Of a DNA stretch of 64,000 nucleotides, positions 1-49,656 are shown piece after piece. How positions within the stretch are numbered: the first letter of the stretch is position 1; each line of letters opens with the position of its first letter. The notes beneath the pieces are model-generated. The model had not been told where the DNA came from. It worked only from the letters and a program-made list of their open reading frames with translations, and ran no database searches. The position numbers and the translations under genes are program-made. The stretch covers positions 256,270-320,269 of the forward strand of contig NW_005434640.1 in the NCBI RefSeq assembly GCF_000315625.1, written 5' to 3'. This DNA is from Guillardia theta CCMP2712 (taxonomy: Eukaryota; Protista; Cryptophyta).

Positions 1-3000
1 GTTGCCATGGACGGCGAAGAAGTGACATATCCATTGTTCGAACTTGACTGCTTGCAAAGTCACCACCTCAAGTGGTGCACAGGTACGGTACCTGCAAGCT
101 GGAGTACGCCATCTTCACGGGTGTGTTGTTGGAGGGAGGGACCTGGCAGTCAAAGATTGGAACAAGAACAGGAGGAACAGGAAACGAGTGACTTCACTAC
201 CTCGAGCGGCCTTGAGGTCTTCGGGGCGGTATCGGGGAAGATGAATGCCTCCCTGCTGTAGTCCTCGAAATCCCTGAAGGGAACAGAACAATTCTGCAGC
301 GCTCTAGCAAGTTCCTCCTGTCACCTTCCCGTCAGCTCAAGTCTCGAGCACAGTGTGGGGAGTAGGATGTGGAGCAAGTCAAGACTTGTGACCTGGGACT
401 TGTGCAGCATCTCCCACTGCTTGTGAAGCTCTTCGTGTGATCTCTTGAAGTCATTGTCGCTCTGCATTCTCATCCTCTCCTTGTCCACGATCTTCCTCCC
501 GTCCTCGTAGGCTCTTTCCAGCACATGCTGCAAGTCCCCGTTCTCCAAGGAGAGCATCCTCTCCTGCACTTTGGCCTCGTAGAGCTGCTTTTCTTTGTCT
601 ATCATGGCTGACTTAAGACAAGACGATCACACGCTTCCAGCTCGCTCACCGATTCTTGCATCCTCCAGCTGCATCTTCAACACCTCCATGGCCTCAATCT
701 TCTCGGGTTCCTTTGCAGTCTCTCTCTCCAACTCTTCGCTCATCTGCCTTTCTCTTTCCAGAGCTCTTGCTTTCTCTGCCTCTGCATCCTGGCACGCAGA
801 CGTGTTGAGCGGCAAGAGGGCGATGATAAAAGTTGTTACCTTGAGTCGGTTCTGGGCACCTGAAAGGTCCACGTGGACCTTGTTCTTTTCCTCTTCGATC
901 TTGTACAGATGGTCTCTGAGGACTGCAATTCTCTCTCGAAGAGCCTATACCAACAATTCAGCCTGCCATGCACAGGGTTGAAACTGAATCATCTGACCTC
1001 TGCCAGACTTTCTTCTGCCTGGAGTGCGGCCTCAAGGCTTTTGTTCTCCTGCAGAGATCAACCATTCAGAGAATGGCATTGCACGAAACCTGACTACTTC
1101 ACCTGTCCCATGCGCATAGCATTCTCTTCGAACTTCGACTGCTTGGTATCCAAATCCTCCTTGGTCCTTCTGTACTCCTTCAGATGAAGCATATCAGTAC
1201 AACTGAATCGCAGACACCGTTGCTTACATCTTTGGTGCTGTTCAATCGCTTTTGAAGCTCATTTTCAGACTTGCGGTATCTTTCCAAAAGTCATCGATAC
1301 CTTGAAGGTTTTCAATCGCGATATTTACCTGGCATTTTCCTCAGCTCTGCTTTCTTGCTCAAAACGCAGAGCGTTCTCCATTCTTTCTCTTTCATTCTCA
1401 AGCTTCTGCTTGAGATCGTCGATGATCTTCTCACGCTTTTTGATCTATCATTTCATAAGAATTTTCTCATCTCAGAGTCATCTTTTGTATTTATGCCACC
1501 TGCTCTTCTACTTCCATGATCTCAGCCTGAATGTTCTTGTTCTTATTTTCCTTCTCTGCCCTTGCCGAATCAATGTTCGATCTGGCTTCTTCAGCTTCTT
1601 GGAGCATTTGGTTCAGTCTGTTGTTGTCATCTTGAAGCTGAAGTTTGGCATGAAAATCAATAATTCAAGTCACATTAGAAAACGCAAGACCTTGTTCTTC
1701 TGCTGAAGATTTCTAGAAATTCTGGACTGAATCATCTGCGCAAAATTTGAGCCCGTCCAACAGCACGAGGGTGCAAAACCTCTCTCTTGCGAATGATCTC
1801 CTCGATTTCAGCCTGAGTGTCCCTGCAGGTCTTTTCATACCTGTATGTGAACAATCAGGACGAACAAGACCAACACAAGCTTGCTCTGTGAAAACAAACC
1901 TGCTCCTCTCTTCGTCAATTGCCATGAGCTCCCTTTCTCTTGCCTCCCTCTCTCTACGATCTCTCTCCACTCTGACCAGGAGCACGGAGTTCAGTACATC
2001 TTACACTGCAAGCGGAGAAACGTACTCAGCTTCCATCCTTCTCTTCAGTTCGCTCTCTTCTTGCTCGAGGCTTGAACGCTTGTTAATTTCGCTCTGAAGA
2101 TAGTTCTCTTGCTCCAACTTGTTCTTGCGGGTAGACTGATGTACAGGTGAACACCAAGAGCACTGAGAGACTGAAACAAGACCTCTAGAGACTGATGCGC
2201 ATTGGCCAGCTTGTCCTGGGCCTGTGTGAGCCATCCTCTGAGCTGCTCGAGGCTCCTCATGTCCTGGTCGCGTTGTTCTCTGAGGGGGAGCATCAACAGT
2301 GAGAAACTTCCATCTCGATGATGATGGTGTGTTACTTGGCCGCTATGACTCTCGTTTCAATCTCTTGCTTCTCACGACGATACTGGCTGACGGAGTACTG
2401 CAAGCTATGCAACCGCTCCTCCGTTGTGCTGGGTTTCAAATAACGCAAGGAAGACAACAGTTTGTGAGTTCTTTTCATACCGAAGCAGACGTCTCAGCTC
2501 ATCGATTTCGCTTCTGTCAGAGTTGGTGTCGTTTTCCAGCATGCTCAACTTCACAAGGCAGCAATCACACAACGAGAGTCAAAGCTTGAGCATGTACCTT
2601 GGCACGAAGGTCCTCCCTCGTTTCTTCCGCGGACTTGTAAGCAAGTCTGATTCGGTCTACTTCTTCCTGTAACGGTTGTTACCTCCACAACATCGCATCC
2701 TAGTTGATTCACAGAACCTGCAGCCTAACTTTTTCCTTGAGTTGGGAGAAGAAGGAGGCATTGCCCCTGATCAGCGACACCTTGTACTCAAACAGCTCTC
2801 CATCTGCACTCTCACGCAAGAACTGCAATGTCACGAAAGTCCCTATTTCCCCGAGGATTAGAGAGCGAAGCTCAGACATCGCCGACCCCTTCACTTCCAC
2901 CCCGTCGACCTCTTGGATTATGTCGCCCACTTGGACGGTTCCCTCGCGATCTGCCGAGGTTCCCTTCACAATAGACTTGACGAAGACGATGTTCTTGTTC

Positions 3001-3252
3001 CCCTCCTTCGGAGCGAAGAAGATTCCAACTCCAGCCTTGTCTGAGGAACGCGGTCATCATGAATGAACGCACAGGACGGGCATTCTTACTGCTGTCCATG
3101 AGCTCTTCGTTGTTCCCAGAGCCATACTTGGCCGATTGACTGTTCTTGGTGGTGCTTGGCGATGTGTTGGTTAAGGTTGGAGTTATGGGCCTCCCCATCG
3201 TGTATGTGACGCCAGGCGGGCTGGCGTTGTTGGACATGAAGCTATAGTTCAT
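1..3252 (-). CDS. Multi-exon PDZ-domain plus long coiled-coil protein (3' end beyond window start)
   Basis: PDZ-like segment GVGIFFAPKEG..VKSIVKGTSADREGTVQVGDIIQEVDGVEV..LRSLILGEIGTFVTLQFLR at ~2820-3035. Many short E/K/R-rich exons follow, separated by ~50-nt introns. Confidence 0.75.
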
Positions 3253-4796
3253 CTTGACCTGTAGGCGTGTATCAGGCAAGCTCCAGCAGCAAGGTTGATT
3301 CCACAAACATGTCAGATTCCTTCCATTCTAAGTCGTGCGCACAAAGGGTTTCTAAAAACCTCTACTGTAACTTCTATTACATTGATCTCAATTTTTCGAT
3401 CCCTTCATGAATGAGAATATTCCTCGCATCACTCTCCCTTCGAAGCGTTATTTTTTCAAACCTAGTAGTTTCTCATTCCATTCCTTCCAACATGCATGTC
3501 CAAACGATGCATCAAAGTACATTCCTCCATCGTCTCTACATCATCTCGTGATATTGCTGGATATTGCCATAGAATTCAGTATTCTTTCTACATCCCTTGA
3601 TTTCCCAGTTTCAAAAAACTTAAGAATCCTTTGTCAGTCTTTTGAATACCATTCTATCCTTCACAATGATCACTTGTTCTCACTCCTGATGTACCGTATC
3701 TTGCCTACTATCTTCTCCCATCCTCTCCTCTCAGTCCCTCTTCATCTTCCTCCTTCTCCTCCCTCCATCAAGGTTCGTCCCTCCATCCCCGTCCGCGGCC
3801 ACGGGGCAGCCACAACAGCTCATTTCAACTTTTTTAAAGTGTCAATGGCTATTTTCAAATTGTTCCTGATAAAATCAGGCTGTTCCTCAAAATGCCCGTA
3901 CGGTTACCAGTAACAGGCCCGACTCCGGGTCCGTGCAATTGGAAGTTGGCCAGTACGAGACATCTTATACCCCTCTATTTCCCATAAATCAAATAGCAGA
4001 AGGGTACATCTTATATGACAGGTGTTGCCAACTTCAACAAAATCAGTTGGACCCTCTCCCCCTCCACCGGCCCCTACCGGCCTATCAAGTACCCCTGGGT
4101 TCCCGGAAAGACCGGCGGTACCCTGATTTAAATCGGTTGAATGCTTCGAATTTTATTGGATCCGATAGTTGGTCTGATCTGATCTGCGATGGATTTTATT
4201 CGCCTAAATCGATTCAAATCATCACACAATCGCCGTCGGATTTTTGACGGCGATCATGCTGGGGTTGACCCGTCTCTCCCTCTCGCCCGTCCTCGTCTCC
4301 TCGTCCCCCCCCTCCCTCCTCCCCCCTCGGTCCTCCGCTTCTCCTTCTCCTCCTCGACTTCCCCAGCGCACCTCGCCTGCTCCTTCCTCGACCTCCCCAC
4401 TTCACCTCCGGGCCAGTTCCGAGTTAAGTCCGCAAGCTGGCCAATTTTTCACTTCTCCGTCCCCGCCGCATGCACAACAAATCTCAAGTTCGGCAGTGCA
4501 GCTCGTTCCCTCCCTCAGGCTGAAGCAGCTGCCTCACAGCATGCATGCATCTTCAAGAGCTCAGTCGTCTAGGTCGCCTGCGGGGGTATCAACGAGCAAA
4601 AAAGGGTCTGGGAGCGAGAGAGAGTCGAGGACGAGTGCGGAAGTGATCTGGTAGAGAGAGAAGGCAGAGAGATGTTGCAGCAGGTGAGCTGATGGTTCCT
4701 GCAGGGGGTTTCACAATCATCTTCGATTTTCAGGTGCGATTTTTACCATTTGTATGCATGCCAATCTCATCGTTTACAGATGGTAGGGGGGCAGGG

Positions 4797-5850
4797 ATGG
4801 TGGAAAGGTCGAAGCAACGAGTTCGCAGTGTCAGTCCTCCTCGGAACCTGACTCCTGAGGAGAAAGTTGCGAAGCAGCATGCCCTTGCGGCGGAGGGGAA
4901 GGTGGAGGAGATCGTACCGGGGATCGAGAGCTGGTAAATGGGATTGGCAGCACTTTTGCATCGGACTGAGGTTTCTCAGGCTGAGAAGGACGGGGAAGAT
5001 CCTTGGCAAGAAGGAGACGAGGAGAAGGAGGCCTGTATATAGCAACATCGTCGTGACGATCACAGGAGAGAGTCAGAGACAACAACGGCCCGCCCACGGC
5101 TACGCGCCGTCGGAAGCCGGGGCATCGGAAGAGGCCTGCTCTAGTCTACTTCACTGCATCAGGTGCAGGACGGGAGCTGATGCAGCCTCCTGCCCACCTG
5201 ATTGCCGTGCAGGAACCTCTCGCGGAAGGTGGAGCAGCTGGGGAGGGAGGGTGTGATCTCGATGCACTTCATCCTAACAAGTGATACATCCTCCTCTTCC
5301 TGACTTTGCCCGACCTCACCCGCACGACTGTCAGGGCTCAACGTCTCCGAATGGAAGGAGCTTGCGGAGATGCCCGTCGTCTGTGACGAGAGTTTGAAGG
5401 CGAGATGTTGCCAACTCCCTTGCTCCTTGCTCCTTGCTCCTTGCTCTCCCTCCCTCTCCTCTGGTATCTCTCTCTACCCCTTCTCCTCAGTCTACGCGCC
5501 CCTTCTTCTCGCCGACGTATGATGTTGTCTTGAGGATCACTGAAGGTGTTCTGCAGGACGGGCAAGAGAGGCAGCTGCTGATTCAGAAAGAGCTTGCAAC
5601 AAGACTCGCGATGCTGCAAGCAGCTGTAGATGAGGTGAAGTCTGTTCAAACTGTGAGGAACGTGTCGCTGTTTGCTGTTGTCGACCTTGCATTATGATGA
5701 TATGAACAAAACTCGATGGTCTGCGCGATGTTATGGACCAGATTGTTCTGCCTTCCGTATTGTTTCTTCTCTTGCCATCCCGATTGCACGAAGACGGCGG
5801 AGTGAAAAGAAGTCTTTCTGACAGGCGATGGAGGTCCAGGACGAAGGATC
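4797..5850 (+). CDS. Hypothetical multi-exon protein
   Basis: ATG at 4797 (MVERSKQRVRSVSPP), a GTAAAT...CTCAG intron, and a later coiled-coil exon (LLIQKELATRLAMLQAAVDE). The 3' end is uncertain. Confidence 0.45.
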
Positions 5851-6047
5851 ACTTGAGTTCAGAGAAGCGATTCAGTGGGGGTGCGTGCAAGTCAGCAAGT
5901 AGCAGAACAAGTGGAAGAGCCCCGCCATTCGTGCTGTTTGCACAAGATACCCAACTGGGGGGGAGGAGGTCTACTTGGCAACTTTGTTCGGTTGTTCTAC
6001 AAGTTGGTTGTATTCTACAATCTTTGCAAAGATCTGTCACGTTTGCA

Positions 6048-9532
<3,485 letters not shown>

Positions 9533-21764: not shown

Positions 21765-23970
21765 CTAAAGACCCAGTCTGACAACCATCGCGGAAGCGAC
21801 CCCTGCACCCGAGGCGGAGGAGACGAGACGGGCGAAGGGGGAGAGGGAGAGGGGGAAGAGGAGGGGCAGGAAACGTCTTAAAAGCGGACGGGGAAAAATT
21901 GAAATCTTACGTGTATGACAGCAGAAGCTATCAGTTGGTCTTTCGGACTTCCTTCTCCTTGAACCATCACAACCTGCAGACACTGTATTCAGATCCCCCC
22001 TCCTCCTTCTCCTCTTGTACTGCCTCCCCTCCTCCTCCTCCTCTCACTCCCCTCCTTCCTCCCTCTCCTCTCCTCCCTCTCCCCCACATCCGCCTCCTCC
22101 TCCTCACTTGCAAGACTTGTTCTTTTTCGAGGCAACCAAACGACATCGCTGGCTCGCCTGACCAGCTGCATCCTCAGTCAGCAGCTAGAAGGGGTAAGGA
22201 GATTGAGGAGGAGGAGGAGGAGGAGGAGGAGGAGGAGGAGGAGGAGGAGGAGGAGGAGAGGAGGAAGACAAGGGAAAGAGTCGACCTCAGGATGGGTCCA
22301 GTGTTCCTGCATAAACCAGTCTTCCTGGCTCCTTTTTGGCCCGCGGATATGATGATGTAGAAGGAGGCGCTAGCAGCAGCAGCGTTCTGAGGAAGAGGAT
22401 CAGGCGGGAAAAGGAAGACGAACAGGAGGAGGAGGAGGAGGAGGAGGAGGAGGAGGAGGAGAAGGAGGATACAAGAGGGGAAAGGTGCAGGAGGGGATGG
22501 GTGTTGTTGGAACGACAGGGTCAATGTGGGAGAAGAAGAAATCGATCCCCCAACGACGAGGACGAGGAGGGAGGGACAGAAGTCAAGGGGGACCTTGTTG
22601 AACATGAAGTTGGAAGCGTTCTTGACAGAGATATCCAGCAAGAAGCTGCTGCTGCTGCTGCTGCTGCTGCTCTTTCCTTTGGTCTGTTCAGATTCTGCTC
22701 CTTTCTTCTTCCACCGAAACTCCATCACAACCTGCTAAGGGTGAGGTTGCCCGGCACTCTAAACTCCCTCCCAAAATCGTCTGCTCACCGACACTAACTT
22801 GCTCTTCACTGTTGATTGCTGCGAAGATACTCGTCATGGTATGGTAGTTCATATTGTTACAATTGAAACAACAACTACAATCATCATCCATGACAATCAC
22901 TACCACCACCACCACCACCATCTCCATCATCATCTACTCCATCATCAACATCAACATCAACATCATCAACAACAACCCCATCTACCTGATTTGGCGTTTG
23001 AACAGCAAACAACTGCACAGTCTCCACCATCCTGTACTCCTCTTCCTCCTCCTCCTCAATCTCCTTCATCCCGCGCTTGACAGGTGTTTCCCCCTCCTTC
23101 AGCATCTTCCCTCTCTCCATCCCCCTCTCCGTCAGCATCTCAGGCAGGGACCTCTCCGTGCACAGCGCAGAGCTCGCGTCCTCAGCCTCAATCTCTTGCT
23201 CCTCTTCCGCAACAGAGGACCAGAGCTTGCGCATCGTGATCAAGTAGCTGTCTGCGCTCCTCCCTTCTCCCTCCTCCCCGACTACCTGCTCCTCCACCTT
23301 GCTTAGAGCAAAGTCCGGGTCTCCCCAGGCCCTGCTGGGGCTCCACATGATGGGCAGGAGGGGGTCGATGCCCATGTGGTCCTTGAGGTGATGAGGGTCC
23401 GGCGGGGATGTGGGAGTCTGGAGGCTGCGATACTGATCACGACCCTGTCCTCCGTCATGGCTCCTCCCTCCCTCCTTCTGTTGTTCCTCTTTCTCCTCCT
23501 CCTCCTCCTCCTCCTCCTCCTCTTTCTCTTGCTCCTCCTTCTCTTGCTCCTCCTCGCGTCCTTGATCGTGCAACAGCTTCCCCACCCTTGCCAAGTCTGT
23601 CGCTGCATGGAGAGCCTCGTCGCTCTCACGGGGGATTCGGATATCCTCGCCTCCTGCTCGCTCATCGACGTGGTCAACAGTCGTGCGACGGTGGCGCTTG
23701 ACTTCACTCATGGATCCTCCTTGAGGAGTCTCATTGCCACGAGCTTGATCGCTGAAGTCCTGCTCCTGCTCCTGCTCCTGCTCTTCCTCCTGCTCTTCCT
23801 CCTGAACTGTCTCTTTCGAGATGTCAGTCTTGCCGTCATGATAGCCATCAGCAACATCGTCCTCGTCCTCCTTCTCTCTCTTTTCCTTGACTCCATTCAT
23901 CTTCACAGGTCCCTGCGCCGGCGACGATGCGACAAGGTCATTCCATAAGTCCTCGATGCTTGCATTTCCC

Positions 23971-24041
<71 letters not shown>

Positions 24042-25859
24042 TCGCTCCACATTTCCGTTGCTATTTCCTGCATCATCCTCTTCTCGTCTCCCTCGCTCCT
24101 CCCCCTCCTCCTCCTCCCCTTCCCCCATCATCCGCGGGATCACGTTCGTGTGCCTCTTAGGCTTCCACTTCTCCCCCCCTGTCTCCTCCTTCTGTTCAGC
24201 TGCCTCTTCCGGGTAGAATGTGCGGAACTGGTTGTTGTTCAGATCTATCCTCACATTCTTGCGCTGCTTCTCCTCAATCTCCCTTATCTGAGTCTCCACA
24301 GACGCACTTCTCCCTCCTCGCCCGAACAGGTTCAACACAGGGCTCGGCGTCTGCCCGAACTGCGTTTGGAAGGAAGCAGTGGAAGCAGTCGGAAGACTCG
24401 ACCAGCTACCTCCAACTCCGCGTCCTACTCCTGGCTCCCTGCCCTTCTCCTCCTCACTCCAGAGCCCGCTCGCCATCTCGAGCATGCTCTGCGGTCTGTC
24501 CGGCAGCTGCTGTTGGAGGGGCTGCGGAAAGAGCTTGTCCAGGAAGGCAGGACGAGGAAGGGAGGTATTCAGAGGGCTCGGCGTCTCGTGGCGAATGCGC
24601 AGGACCTCAGGAGAAAGACTCATCCTCTCGAACTCCGCCCGCATCTCCTTCACCGACTTCTTGCCTTGCTCCCACTTGCTTTCCTCCTGCATCAGCTGCT
24701 GCTGCTGCTGCTGCTGCTGCTCCTGCGTGTGAAGCACGTCAAACTTCTCTGAAGTGAAGCTGCGGTCCAAGCTGAAACTTTTCTTCGTCTCCTCCACTCG
24801 GCCTCGGTTGGCTTTGCCCAGGTCCTGGGCCTCTTGAGTATGGCGAGAGAAGTTTGACAGGACGAGGGAGTTTTCCTCCCATGGCAGCTTCGTCGGCGCC
24901 TCGTCCTCTGTTCGCTGGTCCTCTTCTTCATCGTCTGATGACATCGGCATTGCCTTGACTTCGATCTGCTTGTTGAGATGTAGCCTCAATGTCTCCGCCC
25001 GTTCGCCCTCCTTCCTCCTAGATTCTGCTTCCGTATCAACTTGTTCTCTCTCGCCTATATCTTGCTCTCGCTCTTGCTCTTGCTCTTGGCCTTGCACTTG
25101 CTCTGGCTCTGCCTGCTTCTCTTCTCTTTGGTGTTCTTCCTCTTGCAGATTCTCTTCCTCTTCCTCTTTATCGTTGCTTCCAAGTGCTCTTTCTCGCTCT
25201 TCCTCCTCCTCTACCTCTTGCTGATTGTTTATCTCGCCGACAGGCGAGGATTGATGCTGACTCAGCGACTCTGTAGTATAAGAAACCCAACCCTTCAGGC
25301 AGTCAGAACTGATCCTCCTCGACGAGGAGACGAGTAGATCGGCTCTTTCCCAGCTCTGCAAGCATGCAACTTGCCTCTCTCGCGAGGAGGACAATGCTTC
25401 ACACAGGCCCAAGAACGATCTCCTCAACACCCTGAGATTCAGTTTGATCAGAAGCTCCACGGACTTGTCGGCAAAATTCGTCCTTGTTGCGGTTTGTGGG
25501 CTCAAGACTGCCAGCAGCACATGAGCATGCTATCGGGCCCTGCCATCTCCTCCTCTCACCTCGGTCCAGCACTTTCATAGTCTCGCCGGGGATAGCTGGG
25601 TGGGGATAGCAGAGGATCGCATCATTCGCGTTGGCACGGTTTCAGCATGCGCGGCGACATCACATAGCCTCGGCATCCATTCCTTCGGTCAATCTTCTTG
25701 CTCTGAGCTCACCTGATGATCCTGTCATGAACCAAACAACATCCCGTCCATCTCAACTCTGACACTTGAAAGTCTTTAGTTCCTCTCAGCATGTGGTACT
25801 GTAGTTTTCGAATCTAACAGACGCCTGAACGACTGCCTGCTCCTCCCTTGCTCCATCAT
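21765..25859 (-). CDS. Large Glu/Gln-rich low-complexity hypothetical protein
   Basis: 878-codon ORF at 22884-25520 plus short flanking exons. Outer boundaries are approximate. Confidence 0.65.
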
Positions 25860-39567: not shown

Positions 39568-41503
39568 GCTGGCGATCGATCCCGATGGCCCTCAATCGCA
39601 CACAACTGACAAGACAACAGCTGCAAGCTCCTACAGCAAACGTGGAGCAGCAACAAGCAAGAGGACGGTTCTTATTCTTCCCGCTGACGACGCGACTGCA
39701 CGTTCATCGTCCTGCTGCAGGCAGGAAACGTTACAAATACTCCCCACTACCAACATAGGATAATGAAACAACACCAATATCATGATTTAGTTCCAATCAA
39801 GCAGATAACTCTTGCAGCAACACTCGAGACTCTCGACTCTTGTCCTGAATCCAGCAAAACCTCTCCAAAGATCTATCTCAACAATATGTGACGGAATCCT
39901 TCTCACAAACCACAGGAACATTACACGCTCACTAGTTCTGACAGTCTACGTGACATCCATACTTTTTTATTCTTCTGAAATGCCAAGTTGTTTGTTCTGT
40001 GAACAGAGCAGCCTCGATTGCACAACCTATCCCCTGGTTGGCCCCATTCAACAGTCTCTCCGTTCTACTTGTCTTGAATGTCCCGACATTCCCTCATCCT
40101 CTACCACACAAGAACTACCAGATCTGTTCATATCTTCATCAATCAACCTCTCTTCACGCCTCTGATGTTCCTGCCTCTCACTCAACTTCCATGATCAACT
40201 CCGCCGCTGTCAGTCCTGCCCTGCCATAGCTCCGCCCACATCTACGCCAGTGCTCCCACCCACCGACACCCCTTGTACTTTACTTATGTTTCGTACAAAT
40301 TTGGTAGAATGGTTATCATGGTACATATTTCATTACCATGTTGCTCTTTTAAATTTTAAAAATGAATTACAACTTTGAGTTATTTAACCACCCCTAGCTA
40401 TTCGCCAAACAGGGGGAAAAGGGGACCCCACCCACACTATCATGGAGTTTTCCTGCACCCCAAATCAGCATTGAAGTACCCCTGCTTATAGCGTACAAGT
40501 GATAATACCACCGGTACAGAAACAGGAATACCCCGTTTCTTTACAATCAAGTACCCCACCTTTATAGAGGCTTATCACTTGTCCTGTCTGAATAATCCCA
40601 CCACTCTGTGCGGCATTGTACCTACTTACTCGAGTACCCCACCGAAGCTCAACACCACCCCCTAGTCCTGTATCACCTACGCCCCGAGCCGCCGGGCCGG
40701 TGGTGATTGAAACTTCCGATCAACTTGCAAGGCCCGGCCCTTCCGACTGAGTCGGGTGACTCAAAGTTCTGCCGAAGTAATCAAGATCGGCGTGGCACAA
40801 CCGTTGACTTGAGCGCAGGGGGGCAGTGACTCCTCTACCGTACCGTGTCAAAGTAAAGTCGATGCGGCCCGGCCTGCCGCTGGATCGGGCACGGCCCGGA
40901 CGGTGCCCGCCCGGTGGCCGCGATCCACCCGGTCACCGACGGTTCCCCGGCACTGTAGACAGGCGGCGGCCTGACAGACAAGTCACTCAAGTTACTCCGG
41001 CGGCACTCCGCCAGGCCCTGAGGGTGGTTGACTGTACGGTCCAGTCCCTGGCCATACCGGCATCACGCTGAGGGTCATACTACATACTACATGACAGTGA
41101 TACACGGCACTCCGTGTACAACGGCTGATCGGCCGGGCGGCCCGGCAGCCCAGGAGTCTCAGCCGTTGAGGCGTCATGTCATGATCCTTTGTCATACAAT
41201 CCGATCATCATTAATTTGCATCTTGCTTCTTGAAGTTCTGCAAAAACACTTTCAGTTAGAAAGTTTTCACGAATGACAAAATTGACAGCGGTGAGCCGTC
41301 AAGCCTGAAACCGTGACTAGTATCAGCATTGAAAGCCGACATTGATACGAAGTCTATGGTGCTGCATGTAGTTTCCTCACATCATATCAATTTCCAAAGA
41401 TTACGTCAATCTTTTGAGGATGTTTCCCTTTTATTGGTATGCACTTAAAGATCAGAAAGAATAATTACATTCAGAAAATGCCCTCACGAAAGCTATACAG
41501 GTA

Positions 41504-41818
41504 TCATGCACTGGCATTGCGCTCTCTCACTGTTCGTATCCGAAGAGCTCTTGCCTGGCACGGCAGCTCCCGACCGTCGATTGACCCTCCATTCACCATC
41601 TGCTCCCGTTCAATATACGCGATGGCTCTTGCGAGCATCGTTAGGCGCTTCCTGTTGTAGCCTGAGAACCGTGAGAAGACCTGGGCATCGATGCCGAAAG
41701 GAACAGGAGAAGTCCTTGGCTCTGCTGCAGCCGGTTCAGCTTCATGTGAGTCGGATCTGTTGGAGGGGGCAAGAGGATCAGCGCGGGAGGCTTGCGGAGC
41801 TGGTTCAGTGTTCTGCAT
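41504..41818 (-). CDS. Microprotein family, diverged type C (104 aa)
   Basis: FGIDAQVFSRFSGYNRKRLTMLARAIAYIEREQMVNGGSIDGRELPCQARALR. Differences from type A are mostly synonymous. TATAAA lies on the minus strand at 41851-41856. Confidence 0.75.
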   Translation of the reverse strand: MQNTEPAPQASRADPLAPSNRSDSHEAEPAAAEPRTSPVPFGIDAQVFSRFSGYNRKRLTMLARAIAYIEREQMVNGGSIDGRELPCQARALRIRTVRERNASA

Positions 41819-42269
41819 GCTGTGGGTGGTTGAGAGATTGTGAAGGCAAGTTTATACGGTGCGTCGCGGAGATCGAATCCGAATCTTGTAGTAAACATCT
41901 GTCATCAATCTTTTGAACGATTTACTTATCACAACGTTTCATCAATTTCGTGATGTAAAACTGTCAGCAGCTTGGCTGAAACATGGCTATGCCTTTTTAC
42001 TTCAGGGAAATCTATACACCGCCAAGAAGTTGCTGACAATGCAGACCGCTCGCAGCCATGTCGGACTCGTGACAGTGTATGGTTCCGAAAGCAGAACGTT
42101 GGGGTTTTGAGCTGCACGGGACCCACCGAGGCCGTCATGGTAACGTGATGTCAGCTTCCTTCCATTAGAGCTGAGGCAGCAAACATTCGATCTATATACC
42201 GAGTTGCTGCCGCGCCATTGCGGTCGAGAGCCTGCCTCATCGAAATTCCGGCCGGACTGCTGAAGGATA

Positions 42270-43524
42270 ATGCAGGTAGCGCCGAGCAACGAGGGCAAGC
42301 AGGGAGGGAGTAGGGACCCGATGCTCGCTCCCTCGGTATCCGACAGCGTATTCACTATCTACTCCTTTTTTGCAGCATTTTCCCTCCTGCTCTCATGCCC
42401 ATTCAAGCTCCTCCTCAACATCATCGGCAGCAAACCCCGTGTCCAGCTGCGAAACATGGAAGGGAAGACCGTCATTGTGACGGGCGCCAATGCTGGCATC
42501 GGAAAGACTACGGCAGCATCTCTCTATGCCAATGGAGCATGTGTCATAATGGCATGTAGATCGTTGCAACGCGGAGAGGCAGCCAGGCAGGAAATCGAAG
42601 CGATGTTGGCATCACCCGAGAGCAGCCGCAAGCAACTTTGGATTCATTCAGACCGACCTCACCCGGGAAAGCTTTTGGTCAGGGAGCTCGATGTTTCGGA
42701 TCTCGAATCAGTGAAACGTTTCGCAATCTCCATTGTCAAGGAATTCTCCAAGATCGACGTCTTGGTGAACAACGCTGGTATTAATGGAATGGGAACCGAT
42801 ATACCGTCCAAGACTCCACAAGGAATCCCTTTCATCTTCGGCACCAACTTCGTTGGTCACTTCCTCCTTACACGCCTCCTTCATCCCAACCTGTCGAAGT
42901 CGGGAGGAGGCAGGATTGTGAACCTGTCCTCCGTCATGCATCACTGGGGATCGAAAGATGTGTCCAAAGCTGTTTCCTCAGGGAAGTACCCGAGACAATA
43001 TCAGAACTCCAAGTTGGCCATGGTACACCTGACTGCTGAGCTACAACGTCAGTATGCCGAGACAAGAGTCTCTTCCGTCGCTGTGAACCCAGGCTTCGTT
43101 GCAAGCGACATCTGGAGGGGAATACGCCCAGACTCGCTCGTTGGACGAATGTTCAGGCTAGCCATGGCCGTGCTTGCACTCGACACGAAGCAAGGTGCTG
43201 CTACCTCCGTCGCTGCAGCCTGCATGTCAGATGAGGAGATATGCGGCTCGAAAGTTCCCCTTTACCTTGTGCCATATTGGGTGCCGTCGTTCGCAAGGCT
43301 GCCGTTCGAAATGATGGGCGTGTTTACGGGTAGGTAGAATGTTTTGAGGTATTGCCGAGTTCACTTTTCATCCTTTCAGGTGTGCACTCTTGTCCACCAC
43401 GTGTTTCAAAGAATGAAAGTAAGTCATCTCAAGATTTGTGCATGGAGTGACAATGAGTGCAGAGCAAATTTCCATGGAGCTTTGGAAGGAATGTACAAAG
43501 CTGTGCGCAGGTTACTTGGAGTGA
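42270..43524 (+). CDS. Short-chain dehydrogenase/reductase, retinol dehydrogenase (RDH11-14)-like
   Basis: VTGANAGIG, MACRS, LVNNAG, NFVGHF, RIVNLSS, YQNSK and VNPGFVAS, plus two small 3' exons. Confidence 0.92.
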
Positions 43525-44254
43525 AATGTACCTGATTGAAACCGAAAGCTATTTTTTCCTCAGAGGAAGAGTAGAACTCAATTGGATTAGTTACGATGTT
43601 GTTGCAATTCGTCCCATCGAAAGAATATATAACCGATTTCTTGGTGAAATCCGAAAATCATATTGCAGATGTCCGATCAATTTCAATACTATGCGCAAAT
43701 TCACTTCAAATCCAATACAACCAAAGTATAACCAGTACAGATGGTTATACATCAAAATGACACGAAGAAAGTACATACTCTCAGTATAATGTGCGTCGAG
43801 AAACGATCTCCATCTAAATGAGGAAAAAACACAATAAATTTCATGTCACGATTCACTCCGTATGCATGTTGTTTAAGGAGAAAAAAAGAGACGAAAGGCA
43901 TTGTTATAGATGAGACAGTGAGAATAGATGAAACTGCTCACAGCATGATAGATCCTCGACGAGTTTCCTTGTATCCATACCATCTATTCGCTGTTGAATT
44001 GTACGATATAATGTGCCTCAGTGACAAAATCGCGTGCATTCATCGTGACGCTAAAACGGACGTAGCACAACTGAGATCTTCCTGATTGAAAAAACTTCTG
44101 AAATCAATCAGCTTTTCACAGCCCCATCCAAGATATGCATCACACGTTGCGATCGTCGTGCAACCGACCAGAAAAGTGATAGTCCACGTTTCTTTATATA
44201 CAGCAACATCCTTCAAATACTACTATACAACAAGTACATTCCTGGCGCTTGCGC

Positions 44255-44530
44255 TCACGCTCTGAGCTTCCTGAGCGCCCTCGCCTGGCATGGCAGCTCC
44301 CGCCCGTCTACCGAGCCCCCCGCCGCTTGCTGCTCCCGCTCGATGTACGCGATGGCGCCCGCAAGGCACGCCAGCCGCTTCCTGGCGCCCGCCGAGAAGC
44401 GAGAGTACACCCGCTCGTCCATGCCGAAAGGCGCCGCGGCGCCCGACTTGCTGCCAGCAGCGTCGCGGGAGATGGGGGAGGAGGAGAGGGAGGGTCTGGA
44501 GGCGGGATGATCGTCGCACGTGGGCTGCAT
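44255..44530 (-). CDS. Microprotein type A, copy 1 (91 aa)
   Basis: MQPTCDDHP..FGMDERVYSRFSAGARKRLACLAGAIAYIEREQQAAGGSVDGRELPCQARALRKLRA. Confidence 0.75.
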   Translation of the reverse strand: MQPTCDDHPASRPSLSSSPISRDAAGSKSGAAAPFGMDERVYSRFSAGARKRLACLAGAIAYIEREQQAAGGSVDGRELPCQARALRKLRA

Positions 44531-45117
44531 GGCGGAGGTTGATGGGGAAAGAGAGTTGGAGGCGGGGGAGACGCGGTGGGAATATATACTCCGAGGTCAC
44601 GGAGGGAGGGGCCGAGATTGACCGGCAGGGTCTGCGAAACGATGCGAGATTAGCGTGAGGGTCACGATATCCGCATGGCAGGCCAAGGCTTGATGAGGTG
44701 CCCCGCGTGACCTGATGACAGGCGAGGGAGACGGAGGGTGGGTGTTCACGTTGGTTGGGACGAAACAGCTTTTTGAGGAGCCCAAACGATGCGTATCTGG
44801 AGATGTATCACGCGTACCCCATGGCCTCATGACAACTCCTTCAGCTCCTTCGCGTCGCCTACTCTCTCAGATACGCTATCTTGATCCTGTTGCCGATGGC
44901 GCACAGCGCTACTTCATCTGTCCCATCATCCTGCGACTCAGAGCCACGAACCAGCGATGGCTTCCCTACTCGGGATGAAGGGCTTCTGTCACGCCTCTCG
45001 CCACAGAGAAGGAAGAGGCTGGCGTGCCTTGCGGGCGCCATCGCGTACATCGAGCGAGAGCAGCAAGCCGCGGGGGGCTCGGTAGACGGGCGGGAGCTGC
45101 CATGCCAGGCGAGGGCG
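44276..45117. repeat. 108-bp inverted repeats (44276-44383 and 45010-45117) flanking a 626-bp core
   Basis: The arms differ at 3 positions, all synonymous in the microprotein frame. Confidence 0.9.
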
Positions 45118-45147
45118 GTGAGATGCCATGCCATGCCAGGGCGGTGA
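44896..45147 (+). CDS. Microprotein type B, copy 1 (83 aa, tail AVRCHAMPGR)
   Basis: MAHSATSSVPSSCDSEPR..DEGLLSRLSPQRRKRLACLAGAIAYIERE.. Confidence 0.7.
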   Translation: MAHSATSSVPSSCDSEPRTSDGFPTRDEGLLSRLSPQRRKRLACLAGAIAYIEREQQAAGGSVDGRELPCQARAVRCHAMPGR

Positions 45148-45694
45148 GATGCCAGGCTTCTGCTCTACGAGAGTAGCAAGCCATAGAGACAAAGGCTGGG
45201 AGTGATAGGATATACAGGTGTTGTAACATAGTAGGAGTCGGAGGATGTGGAATACCATGTTGTGTAGAATAAAAACAAGGATGAAGCAAGCACGATTGAG
45301 CCAGATGCTATGGTTGAGCTGAGACCAGCTACAAGGAGCAGACTGATGTATGATAACAGTGTTGCTAAGCTCTGACTGGCCGGGGACCTCGCCAGGACCG
45401 GACCGCCATTTTCAAGCTCGTTGTGCAATCAACCAGTCGAAGGGATATCGTGTCCGGAGGTTCACCTTGCTGTCTTGCCAAATACCTGTCATGTACGGCC
45501 GAGAAGAGAAAAGAAACAGCTCCCTGACGAAACAGGGCCTTGATGTATCAGCCTTTCACAGCCCCATCCAAGATATGCATCACACGTTGTGATCGTCGTG
45601 CAACCGACCAGAAAAGTGATAGTCCACGTTTCTTTATATACAGCAACATCCTTCAAATACTACTATACAACAAGTACATTCCTGGCGCTTGCGC

Positions 45695-45970
45695 TCACGC
45701 TCTGAGCTTCCTGAGCGCCCTCGCCTGGCATGGCAGCTCCCGCCCGTCTACCGAGCCCCCCGCCGCTTGCTGCTCCCGCTCGATGTACGCGATGGCGCCC
45801 GCAAGGCACGCCAGCCGCTTCCTGGCGCCCGCCGAGAAGCGAGAGTACACCCGCTCGTCCATGCCGAAAGGCGCCGCGGCGCCCGACTTGCTGCCAGCAG
45901 CGTCGCGGGAGATGGGGGAGGAGGAGAGGGAGGGTCTGGAGGCGGGATGATCGTCGCACGTGGGCTGCAT
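45695..45970 (-). CDS. Microprotein type A, copy 2
   Basis: Protein identical to copy 1. Confidence 0.75.
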   Translation of the reverse strand: MQPTCDDHPASRPSLSSSPISRDAAGSKSGAAAPFGMDERVYSRFSAGARKRLACLAGAIAYIEREQQAAGGSVDGRELPCQARALRKLRA

Positions 45971-46336
45971 GGCGGAGGTTGATGGGGAAAGAGAGTTGGG
46001 AGGCGGGGGAGACGCGGTGGGAATATATACTCCGAGGTCACGGAGGGAGGGGCCGAGATTGACCGGCAGGGTCTGCGAAACGATGCGAGATTGGCGTGAG
46101 AGTCACGATGTCCGCATGGCAGGCCAAGGCTTGATGAGGTGCCCCGCGTGACCTGGTGACAGGCGAGGGAGACGGAGGGTGTGTTTTCACGTTGGTTGGG
46201 ACGAAACAGCTTTTTGAGGAGCCCAAACGATGCGTATCTGGAGATGTATCACGCGTACCCCATGGCCTCATGACAACTCCTTCAGCTCCTTCACGTCGCC
46301 TACTCTCTCAGATACGCTATCTTGATCCTGTTGCCG

Positions 46337-46482
46337 ATGGCGCACAGCGCTACTTCATCTGTCCCATCATCCTGCGACTCAGAGCCACGAACCAGCGATG
46401 GCTTCCCTACTCGGGATGAAGGGCTTCTGTCACACCTCTCGCCACAGAGAAGGAAGAGGCTGGCGTGCCTTGCGGGCACTAT
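46337..46482 (+). CDS. Microprotein type B, copy 2 (runs into N gap)
   Basis: MAHSATSS..LSHLSPQRRKRLACLAG, then gap 46483-46740. Confidence 0.6.
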
Positions 46483-47135
46483 NNNNNNNNNNNNNNNNNN
46501 NNNNNNNNNNNNNNNNNNNNNNNNNNNNNNNNNNNNNNNNNNNNNNNNNNNNNNNNNNNNNNNNNNNNNNNNNNNNNNNNNNNNNNNNNNNNNNNNNNNN
46601 NNNNNNNNNNNNNNNNNNNNNNNNNNNNNNNNNNNNNNNNNNNNNNNNNNNNNNNNNNNNNNNNNNNNNNNNNNNNNNNNNNNNNNNNNNNNNNNNNNNN
46701 NNNNNNNNNNNNNNNNNNNNNNNNNNNNNNNNNNNNNNNNGCCAGATGCTATGGTTGAGCTGAGACCAGCTACAAGGAGCAGACTGATGTATGATAACAG
46801 TGTTGCTAAGCTCTGACTGGCCGGGGACCTCGCCAGGACCGGACCGCCATTTTTAAGCTCGTTGTGCAATCAACCAGTCGAAGGGATATCGTGTCCGGAG
46901 GTTCACCTTGCTGTCTTGCCAAATACCTGTCATGTACGGCCGAGAAGAGAAAAGAAACAGCTCCCTGACGAAACAGGGCCTTGATGTATCAGCCTTTCAC
47001 AGCCCCATCCAAGATATGCATCACACGTTGTGATCGTCGTGCAACCGACCAGAAAAGTGATAGTCCACGTTTCTTTATATACAGCAACATCCTTCAAATA
47101 CTACTATACAACAAGTACATTCCTGGCGCTTGCGC

Positions 47136-47378
47136 TCACGCTCTGAGCTTCCTGAGCGCCCTCGCCTGGCATGGCAGCTCCCGCCCGTCTACCGAGCCCC
47201 CCGCCGCTTGCTGCTCTCGCTCGATGTACGCGATAGCGCCCGCAAGGCACGCCAGCCTCTTCCTTCTCTGTGGCGAGAGGCGTGACAGAAGCCCTTCATC
47301 CCGAGTAGGGAAGCCATCGCTGGTTCGTGGCTCTGAGTCGCAGGAGGATGGGACAGATGAAGTAGCGCTGTGCGCCAT
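47136..47378 (-). CDS. Microprotein type B, copy 3, with A-type tail (80 aa)
   Basis: B-type N-terminus joined to ..CQARALRKLRA*. Confidence 0.7.
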   Translation of the reverse strand: MAHSATSSVPSSCDSEPRTSDGFPTRDEGLLSRLSPQRRKRLACLAGAIAYIEREQQAAGGSVDGRELPCQARALRKLRA

Positions 47379-47744
47379 CGGCAACAGGATCAAGATAGCG
47401 TATCTGAGAGAGTAGGCGACGCGAAGGAGCTGAAGGAGTTGTCATGAGGCCATGGGGTACGCGTGATACATCTCCAGATACGGGTCGTTTGGGCTCCTCA
47501 AAAAGCTGTTTCGTCCCAACCAACGTGAAAACACACCCTCCGTCTCCCTCGCCTGTCACCAGGTCACGCGGGGCACCTCATCAAGCCTTGGCCTGCCATG
47601 CGGACATCGTGACTCTCACGCCAATCTCGCATCGTTTCGCAGACCCTGCCGGTCAATCTCGGCCCCTCCCTCCGTGACCTCGGAGTATATATTCCCACCG
47701 CGTCTCCTCCGCCACCCAACTCTCTTTCCCCATCAACCTCCGCC

Positions 47745-48020
47745 ATGCAGCCCACGTGCGACGATCATCCCGCCTCCAGACCCTCCCTCTCCTCCTCCCC
47801 CATCTCCCGCGACGCTGCTGGCAGCAAGTCGGGCGCCGCGGCGCCTTTCGGCATGGACGAGCGGGTGTACTCTCGCTTCTCGGCGGGCGCCAGGAAGCGG
47901 CTGGCGTGCCTTGCGGGCGCCATCGCGTACATCGAGCGGGAGCAGCAAGCGGCGGGGGGCTCGGTAGACGGGCGGGAGCTGCCATGCCAGGCGAGGGCGC
48001 TCAGGAAGCTCAGAGCGTGA
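47745..48020 (+). CDS. Microprotein type A, copy 3
   Basis: Protein identical to copies 1 and 2, on the opposite strand. Confidence 0.75.
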   Translation: MQPTCDDHPASRPSLSSSPISRDAAGSKSGAAAPFGMDERVYSRFSAGARKRLACLAGAIAYIEREQQAAGGSVDGRELPCQARALRKLRA

Positions 48021-48445
48021 GCGCAAGCGCAAGGATGTACTTGTTGTATAGTAGTATTTGAAATTGACATGTATGTTTCCGGTGTACGAGATTTTGCTGT
48101 AGATTGAAGTGTACAATAATGAATTACGCCTTTGCTCACGAAGAATCTTTGAATGCTCGTCATGTCATTGTATCATGATTTCTTTTTTTCTTTTTTTTTT
48201 TGCCGTATGCTTGATCTTGTTGTATGGAAAATCGCATTATCATCTGTTGGTTTCGTAGAGAAGACAGTTCCCAACTCATTTTATATGCTTGTGCACATCG
48301 TTACATCCTGCAACAATTCTCATTTCGTACAATTGATCTCTGGAGTAGGGGAACGATCGTCTTATTCCTTTATTACTCAGCATCGAGAATACCAGTCTTC
48401 GATCTTACTTTTGATACCGGGGCACAGCTATCCGATCTTCAATGG

Positions 48446-49656
48446 CTATTTATCGTCCTGGTCGTCTGTGTTGCTTTCGTTTTCTCTGCTTGGGTTTGTC
48501 CTCTTTTTGAACTTGAAACTGGTCTCTCCTTTGAAAGCCAGATCCCAGCCTCCTCTCTTAGGAATCAACTTCGTATTGCGAAACATGTTATGCACAGTTT
48601 GCTTGGGTACTTTGGCATTCCCTCCTGCCTTCTCATCTAGAAAGAGTTGAAGAATCCTTTTCTTGAAATTCTCAGAATGTCGAGGGATAACGGTGAAACC
48701 TTTCCATCCAAAGAAAGAGGCCTTGTCTTTTGGGTCGACAATTTCAAGAGGCTCTACCCATCCCTCGACCATGGAGATATGCAGGCGCATAAGAAAGCCT
48801 TGCTTCTGATTTCTGCGACCCTGGCTTCTGCACTCAGCCAGCTGCTGCTCAAAGATCAATTTCATCGGCGATTCAGAGATTTTCTTCCTATACTCAAGTT
48901 TGATTTCATCTGTCTTTTGGACCCATATCTGCTGTCCTGCTCTCGCTCTCTTGGCCTTATTTGATTTGACGTCCGCCGTTTGTTCTGGTGGCGGAGCTTG
49001 CTCAAGGGGTTGAGAGCCACTTGCCCCTTCATTCGCATGCACTTCTTGTTGCTCCTCGGTCAGAGCTTTCCCGGCCAGAAATGATGCGGTATGGATTTGA
49101 ACTCAGATGACGGATCAGCGTTTAGCCATCCTGCAGAGTAAAGCTCAGTGTCGCCGCCTTGAAAGTCCGTGACGTTCTGATCCTGCTGCTCAGGAAAGAT
49201 CTCAAGATCGGAATGACCTTCCTCTGAAAAAAAGGACATGCTGGTCTGATGGTCTGGACTATCTATCTGTGGATCATTGGCACTTTCTTGTGGAGTATTG
49301 TCTCCTTCCGCAATACTTTGCGTAGTATTTGGATCCTCACGGTTGGTGCACCATTCCATCCTCGTCCTTTCTTCAACCCTTTGTACCAATGCATAGTTCG
49401 ATGGAGACTCAGATGGGTGCAATAAATCGAAAGGTTGTTCAGCAACTTCTAAACACCCATACTCAAATGATGAAAGCGTCGTAATTGAATTCAGCCTCAA
49501 TTCAGCGGAATCATCAGACTCTAGGTACGGCGAAAAAACAACATTATCAGGATCAAGGAGTCTGGGGGATGGCTCCATTCTGCCATTCTGCCAAGGATCA
49601 GGCGATGCTGCTACATCTTCAAGCATGTTATCGTTGTTCTGAAAAGGAAAGCTCAT
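48446..49656 (-). CDS. Putative transcription factor: acidic N-terminus and divergent HSF-like winged-helix C-terminus; split into two frames near 49060-49100
   Basis: GFLMRLHISMVEG..FGWKGFTVI..ENFKKRILQLF..TVHNMFRN loosely follows the spacing of the HSF DNA-binding domain. Confidence 0.45.

Follow-up and report, generated by a model that had tools for sequence, protein, structure and literature searches.

Fold-back inverted duplications, as described by Hermetz et al. (2014, PMC3907307), have a spacer that separates a non-inverted from an inverted copy and is edged by short inverted sequences. Sex-chromosome palindromes are presented in PMC6790999 as sites of arm-to-arm gene conversion and structural variation. 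This report compares with such systems an array of two small-protein genes, A and B, in a 64,000-nucleotide (nt) window of the Guillardia theta CCMP2712 genome (contig C34:256270-320269). The window is this whole stretch, and positions without a contig name are positions in it. A first-pass annotation, made from the sequence alone, had taken the array for an amplified and apparently invertible cassette. Our analysis points to another origin. The array is probably a fixed product of local tandem and inverted duplication in a lineage-specific family of small-protein genes, and not a switch.

Results

Structure of the array

Repeats were delimited with a repeat finder and by self-BLAST. The array and its parts are as follows, with coordinates and strand first.

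44107-45546, + strand: unit 1, made up of left flank L, gene A (- strand), the 626-bp core, gene B (+ strand) and right flank R.
45547-46987, + strand: unit 2, a direct copy of unit 1, containing an assembly gap at 46483-46740.
46988-47264, + strand: direct start of a third unit, 277 nt, with L, an A-type tail and the shared coding repeat.
47157-48062, - strand: inverted copy, 906 nt, with 44 nt of A 3' flank, gene A, the core, and gene B to the end of the shared repeat.
44384-45009: core, 626 bp, holding both N-terminal coding parts and a 365-bp intergenic stretch; copies at 45824-46450 and 47265-47891 (inverted).
44276-44383, 45010-45117, 45716-45823, 46451-46482 (cut by the gap), 47157-47264 and 47892-47999: shared 108-nt coding repeat, which encodes a helix, the GGSVDG loop and LPC.
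44255-44530, - strand: gene A1, 91 amino acids (aa), family domain at E 1e-26.
45695-45970, - strand: gene A2, protein identical to A1.
47745-48020, + strand: gene A3, protein identical to A1, A-type over its whole length; next come 44 nt of inverted L, with unique DNA beyond them.
44896-45147, + strand: gene B1, 83 aa when counted from its first ATG.
46337-46482, + strand: 5' part of gene B2, the remainder lying inside the gap; the frame past 46482 is not readable.
47136-47378, - strand: gene B3', 80 aa, chimeric, with the N-terminus of B, an A-type repeat end, the A tail and the A 3' flank.

Units 1 and 2 are direct copies with a period of 1440/1441 (44107-45036 versus 45547-46477, 98.8% identity). 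A further direct match, between 45300-45823 and 46741-47264, is 99.2% identical. The start of the third unit matches 44107-44383 directly at 98.2%, and its L variants are those of unit 2. The inverted copy is 98.2% identical to 44212-45117 and 98.8% identical to the equivalent part of unit 2. It overlaps the third-unit start inside the 108-nt repeat, and "unit 3" is not a complete unit. The first-pass annotation had counted three head-to-head units at this period; two of them stand as direct units, and in place of the third there is the 277-nt stub with its 906-nt inverted copy.

The repeat finder, self-BLAST and the open reading frames (ORFs) agree that the shared coding ends of the two genes form the inverted repeats around the core, as had been claimed. 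The A and B versions of the 108-nt repeat differ by 3 mismatches (97% identity). The inverted arms of unit 1 are 44271-44383 and 45010-45122, 626 nt apart, and arm length within units is 108-113 nt. The arms of unit 3, 47121-47264 and 47892-48035, lie 627 nt apart and extend to 172 nt (47093-47264 and 47892-48062). Read from the same left flank, units 1 and 2 have the order A<-core->B, while unit 3 has B<-core->A with A-type ends on both sides. The ORF positions bear out these orientations, which the annotation had reported correctly.

A single collapsed copy is excluded by the 20-odd sites at which the units differ. A search of the 87.1-Mb, 669-contig genome found the whole unit at this locus only, which rules out a dispersed mobile element. 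Rfam matched no family over 41000-49500.

Structure of unit 3

The six copies of the repeat were aligned in the coding sense, and diagnostic positions are given as positions in the repeat. The A copies are identical among themselves, and B1 differs from them at positions 47, 88 and 100. The repeat of B3' is B-like at 47, at 70 (as in B2) and at 88, and it is A-like at 100, in the tail and over the whole L flank. This change from B-like to A-like puts the exchange point past position 88, in the final 60 nt of the repeat. The encoded B3' protein has its N-terminus from B and its last nine residues from A.

At the other end, the 44 nt of inverted L that follow A3 carry two small changes. Homology ends at 48062, and the DNA from 48063 is unique in the genome. 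The right end therefore has an A tail with 44 nt of inverted A 3' flank, and not a B tail with R, which indicates an inverted duplication and not a reciprocal flip. With A-type tail and flank at both ends, a simple reciprocal inversion is ruled out. The annotation had itself noticed the A-type flanks and had set the simple flip aside, rightly so. At 7-8 variant sites the inverted core has the state of unit 2 and not that of unit 1.

The direct and inverted arms are 45680-46482 and 47233-48035. The stretch between them measures 750 nt and is interrupted by the gap. By homology to unit 1 the spacer is ~598 nt long (B tail, R, L and A tail), and the repeat stands in opposite orientations at its two edges. 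The locus thus has adjacent direct and inverted copies with a spacer, a junction inside the edge repeats, and an inverted copy that matches the adjacent unit, all of which are features of fold-back duplications. Judged from its sequence, unit 3 duplicates a unit-2-like copy in inverted form, and the junction falls inside the coding repeat that A and B share.

As a source of unit 2, unequal crossover of L copies was also considered. It predicts that unit 2 is nearest to unit 1, whereas the nearest copy is the inverted one, and this source is not preferred.

Head-to-head pairs at other loci

A and B belong to a gene family that is described further below. Divergent pairs of family genes with arms of 93-100% identity are present at five further loci, listed here by contig.

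C1: arms ~1.8 kb, 96-99% identical, covering the whole gene and flanks; spacer 909 nt.
C3: arms 160 nt, 100% identical, strictly within the coding sequence (CDS); spacer 1441 nt.
C31: arms 410 nt, 93% identical, covering nearly the whole CDS; a tandem third gene at 1603 nt.
C88: arms 187 nt, 98% identical, within the CDS; spacer 1971 nt.
C92: arms 279 nt, 97% identical, from ATG-2 to stop+4; spacer 518 nt.

C3, C88 and C92 have arms limited to the CDS, and the same is almost true of C31. On C92 (45000-52500, internal positions 3202-3480 and 3999-4277) the arms match the limits of the 91-codon CDS almost exactly, and the flanks are without similarity. The C31 locus (521000-530000, internal positions 2971-6266) has three family genes in the order (-)(+)(+), with inverted arms of 352-381 nt and a tandem period of 1603 bp. 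This mix of tandem and inverted copies mirrors the array in the window, and the C-terminal tail is different in each of the three copies.

Between loci, the median proportions of synonymous and nonsynonymous differences in the family domain (pS and pN) are 0.77 and 0.47. Because pN is below pS in 134 of 135 pairs and A differs from its nearest paralogue by a synonymous divergence (dS) of 1.19, the domain is protein-coding and old. Synonymous sites between loci are saturated, so high arm identity means recent exchange. The arms have sharp limits and, at 93-100% over the six loci, an identity far above the divergence of the family (the between-locus pS just given). The simplest reading of the coding-limited arms would be that gene conversion goes on between partners of old standing, with non-coding flanks that have since diverged, and the A/B repeat of the window, with its length of 108 nt and 3 mismatches, fits this pattern. 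Conversion of this kind would keep the coding segments alike and the flanks unrelated, so that the inverted repeats coincide with the coding ends of the genes themselves.

Proposed origin of the array

The array probably arose as follows. Head-to-head family partners would have been kept near-identical in their coding segments by gene conversion, as the identity patterns across the family indicate. The 1440-bp A/B unit was duplicated in tandem, as the two direct copies show. A broken end or a stalled fork in the A repeat of the third unit could next have paired with the B2 repeat, which lies ~590 nt behind it on the same strand. Backward synthesis through unit 2 would give an inverted copy that starts inside the repeat and leaves a spacer of ~598 nt. 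The new strand, ending 44 nt into the A 3' flank, would have been joined to the present unique right flank. Non-reciprocal recombination between the same two repeats would give the same product. In both cases the outcome would be B3', with a B head and an A tail, and a third gene A. The structure of unit 3 is observed directly, and from it we infer the fold-back or template-switch mechanism. A single historical event, which the first-pass annotation had named as its own alternative, fits best.

Some points weigh against this origin. Gene conversion between partners is deduced from patterns of identity and not from orthologous pairs across species. To tell which end of the array is ancestral would take an outgroup locus. 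The fold-back model is not fully closed at the second junction (48062/48063), where the inverted copy meets unique DNA. The chimeric repeat is defined by two or three diagnostic sites only, and the B2 copy of these sites lies inside the gap. Finally, the read contigs described below give no core orientation per molecule, and ongoing flipping is compatible with the data.

Ongoing flipping is the alternative that survives best, though we regard it as unlikely. General homologous recombination between the 108-172-nt arms, with no enzyme of its own for the task, would occasionally flip the core in some cells or strains. The locus would be polymorphic in structure, and unit 3 would be a captured state that conversion or deletion has since changed. 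In sex-chromosome palindromes, an exchange between the inverted arms can end in a crossover, with the spacer turned round as a result. The arms in the window are 97% identical and have recombined at least once, in B3', and the five other family loci have the same geometry and recently exchanged arms. Set against this are the non-reciprocal state of unit 3, which has the A tail on both sides, and the length of the arms, since 108 nt is short for efficient mitotic crossover. Neither another junction nor two orientations at one position were seen, in contigs that end at each repeat edge. The annotation had proposed that recombination between the arms pairs N-termini with different tails while the ORFs stay open. 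At least one such exchange has taken place, that in B3', with the arms as substrates of recombination or of template switching, but the flipping of the core that was part of the proposal is unsupported. Duplication with an inverted copy remains the preferred reading.

Assembly gap and copy number

The gap is a run of 258 N at 46483-46740, which takes out part of the B2 repeat, the B tail and the start of R. Shifted by 1441, the sequence on either side of it lines up with unit 1, and the homologous piece of unit 1 (45042-45299) is likewise 258 nt long. The simple loss of one such piece would fit this, but the gap could also hide whole extra units. Of the last nine letters before the gap, two differ between B2 and B1. 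The parts to the left and right are joined across the gap by scaffolding only. Two linkages lie clear of the gap. The left contig has L-repeat-A head in two places, and the right one has R-L-repeat-B head-core-A head-repeat-unique flank.

The stretch 42900-45580 was checked against Logan contigs of public runs. Run X3 is a 2021 DNA run with another organism label, X1 is a 2011 run that is possibly from the source sample, and X6 is an RNA run. The k-mer depth in X3 is 70 in the unique flank, 262 in L, 316 in the A-type repeat, 158-238 in the core and 241 in R. It is 182 for a piece that ends 13 nt past the R|L junction, and 130 for a variant specific to the 3' flank of A3. By these depths the array is multi-copy, at ~2.3-4.5x the unique flank, which agrees with the amplification claimed at first, and the copy at the right end is present in independent data. 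One contig of X1 reaches across the R|L tandem junction by 34 nt. Relative to the unique flank, R stands at ~3.4x against 2 assembled copies and L at ~3.7x against 3, and it is possible that there is one more unit than was assembled. The contigs of the public runs end at each repeat edge, and hence can show neither core orientation, nor the reciprocal junction of A head with B tail, nor exact copy number.

A partial assembly artefact, in which copy number, order or the join across the gap is wrong, is quite unlikely. The gap does fall exactly in the repeat and tail region of unit 2, where a scaffolding link is all that connects the two sides, and the X3 depths of R and L do exceed the assembled copies. 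Both informative linkages, however, lie in uninterrupted sequence. The 20-odd differences between units, the A3 3'-flank variant in X3 and the raised depth over the array also stand against an artefact.

The gene family of A and B

Six-frame searches of the genome with A or B gave 41-48 matches, and a family profile found 50 places, of which 37 score E<1e-10. In all, some 40-50 genes belong to the family, and they share a conserved C-terminal helical domain of ~45 aa. An alignment of 17 members has 51 ungapped columns and the motif LS..KRK.L.ALA.SI.YI..LQ...GGS(V/I)DG..LPC. Against 1.84 billion representative proteins the profile gave 19 matches, 18 of them convincing. Nine of these 18 were looked up; they are Guillardia theta hypothetical proteins (e.g. 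XP_005833303), Hanusia phi transcriptome proteins, or ENA contigs. Hanusia phi is represented by transcript-derived proteins only. Among the matches looked up, A and B thus appear to belong to an orphan family that is found only in Guillardia and Hanusia, in addition to the ENA contigs.

An AlphaFold model based on 31 family sequences is confident over residues 31-91, with block scores of 83-95 in the predicted local distance difference test (pLDDT). In A, the modelled parts are a short helix (39-43), a long helix (47-69), the GGSVDG loop and a basic helix (80-90). The N-terminal halves of the family proteins are variable and of low confidence in the model. Searches with the model by shape against the PDB (Foldseek) and the ESM Atlas gave weak and unrelated rows only, with template modelling (TM) scores <0.45, and a search of the ESM Atlas by features gave no usable match. 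Pfam gave no match with A, B or B3' at E<=10. A word-indexed protein search with A had no match, but its length window leaves out, for example, a 215-aa Hanusia protein. A single-protein query of metagenome contigs returned 600 pattern matches, none of which was confirmed, and an exact look-up of A in public assemblies found it not on record. The literature searched mentions neither the locus tags of the annotated members nor inverted pairs in Guillardia.

Family genes are clustered, in tandem, convergent and divergent arrangements. At C144:53000-62999 there are five family genes, four in tandem on the - strand and one divergent, among long CCT/CAT triplet-repeat tracts. The nearest paralogue to the array lies outside it:

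41504-41818, - strand: paralogue A0, 104 aa.

In the domain, A0 differs from A by a nonsynonymous divergence (dN) of 0.23 and a dS of 1.19.

The distinct C-terminal tail of B begins exactly where a 26-bp tandem repeat (45088-45154, 2.6 copies) sets in, at the end of the shared repeat. The tandem repeat encodes this tail, which seems to be a product of slippage in the last codons of the domain itself. A TATATA motif is present at 44583-44588, ~55 nt upstream of the ATG of A, and nothing comparable was seen for B. On this ground the core may be taken to hold an intergenic promoter.

Expression and neighbouring genes

Run X6 is truly RNA, since its contig of the neighbouring dehydrogenase gene skips two GT..AG introns. 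It has a 394-nt contig at 44151-44544, with a depth of 7, that covers gene A and ~100 nt of 3' untranslated region. This contig ends 14 nt upstream of the ATG and ~40 nt downstream of TATATA. Gene A is weakly transcribed. No X6 contig, in this one sample, covers 44545-45580, where gene B lies, though the DNA copy number is the same, and gene B may be silent. X18, the sole RNA run with raw reads, gave only 3 reads, none of them on the strongly expressed neighbour gene, and is uninformative.

The neighbour is a short-chain dehydrogenase gene at 42270-43696 that adjoins the array and has an RNA depth of 354 in X6. Its GT..AG introns are 43329-43378 (50 nt) and 43419-43462 (44 nt). Pfam matched four of eight neighbouring long ORFs, as a short-chain dehydrogenase, an amino-acid permease, a pyridoxal phosphate (PLP) enzyme and the flagellar protein ParcG. 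Pfam found no recombinase among the eight, and A and B, the only family-supported ORFs in the units, are without a Pfam match, in line with the statement of the first-pass annotation that none is encoded here. For an 878-aa open frame at 22884-25520 (- strand), Pfam gave nothing at E<=0.001.

Run X7, a 2023 freshwater metagenome, contains about a quarter of the 31-mers sampled from 43900-46482. Guillardia theta is known as a marine strain in culture. The X7 signal could be contamination or a close freshwater relative.

Discussion

The wider view that head-to-head pairs at all six loci recombine recurrently, with cores flipped or copied again, heads paired with new tails and pairs amplified, and that they are still polymorphic today, strikes us as very unlikely. 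Programmed site-specific inversion, of a shufflon or 2-micron kind, that diversifies the microproteins or drives amplification has next to no chance of being correct: the inverted repeats do surround a core with a putative promoter and the two orientations do give different tail pairings, but the cassette has no recombinase, A and B match no known family, the product is non-reciprocal, the repeat is simply the conserved domain-coding segment of all paralogues, the locus is chromosomal and not a plasmid, and gene B was not seen in RNA. For want of a reciprocal product and a recombinase in the cassette, the shufflon-like interpretation given at first is not supported. The likeness to 2-micron amplification driven by inversion, also drawn then, is formal only for a chromosomal locus that has no recombinase.

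With local tandem and inverted duplication as the preferred origin, the tempting claim of a eukaryotic shufflon is removed, and what takes its place is a compact example of an inverted duplication that would have been primed inside a short coding repeat. The analysis also newly delimits a family of small proteins in Guillardia and Hanusia, with a confidently predicted domain of helix-loop-helix-like form that has no Pfam or structural match. Recurrent head-to-head pairs with homogenised coding arms are a handy system for the study of gene conversion and small palindromes in a cryptophyte nuclear genome. Heterogeneity of core orientation, if true, would make the locus much more interesting.

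Comparison with known systems

Shufflons and promoter switches (Rci, Hin/Gin, fim) likewise have inverted repeats that flank a segment whose orientation sets which coding ends are joined. The array differs from them in that it lies on a eukaryotic chromosome, has no recombinase in the cassette and no defined crossover site, and presents a duplication instead of a flip. The FLP/FRT system of the yeast 2-micron plasmid shares with the array the inverted repeats and an increase in copy number. It needs a circular replicon, the FLP recombinase and re-orientation of the replication fork, whereas the array is one chromosomal locus.

The likeness to sex-chromosome palindromes is closer. These palindromes (for example those of PMC6790999) and the head-to-head pairs have in common arms that are far more similar than would be expected from the divergence of the family, sharp limits of identity, a unique spacer, and proneness to structural change by ectopic recombination. 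The arms are 108-410 nt long at most of the Guillardia loci and mostly coding, and the spacer holds both N-terminal parts and, putatively, both promoters. Conversion between the arms is here deduced from sequence, and not demonstrated across species.

The fold-back and template-switch duplications described in PMC3907307 share with unit 3 the direct copy, the spacer, the inverted copy, the repeats at the edges, and a second junction to other DNA. They differ in scale and place, since the duplication reported here spans ~1 kb within a gene array and not megabases at chromosome ends, and it shows no evidence of a dicentric intermediate or a terminal deletion. The priming repeat would here be a 108-nt coding segment common to two paralogues. 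By these comparisons the locus behaves like a combination of two well-known processes, the concerted evolution of inverted paralogues and duplication by fold-back or template switch.

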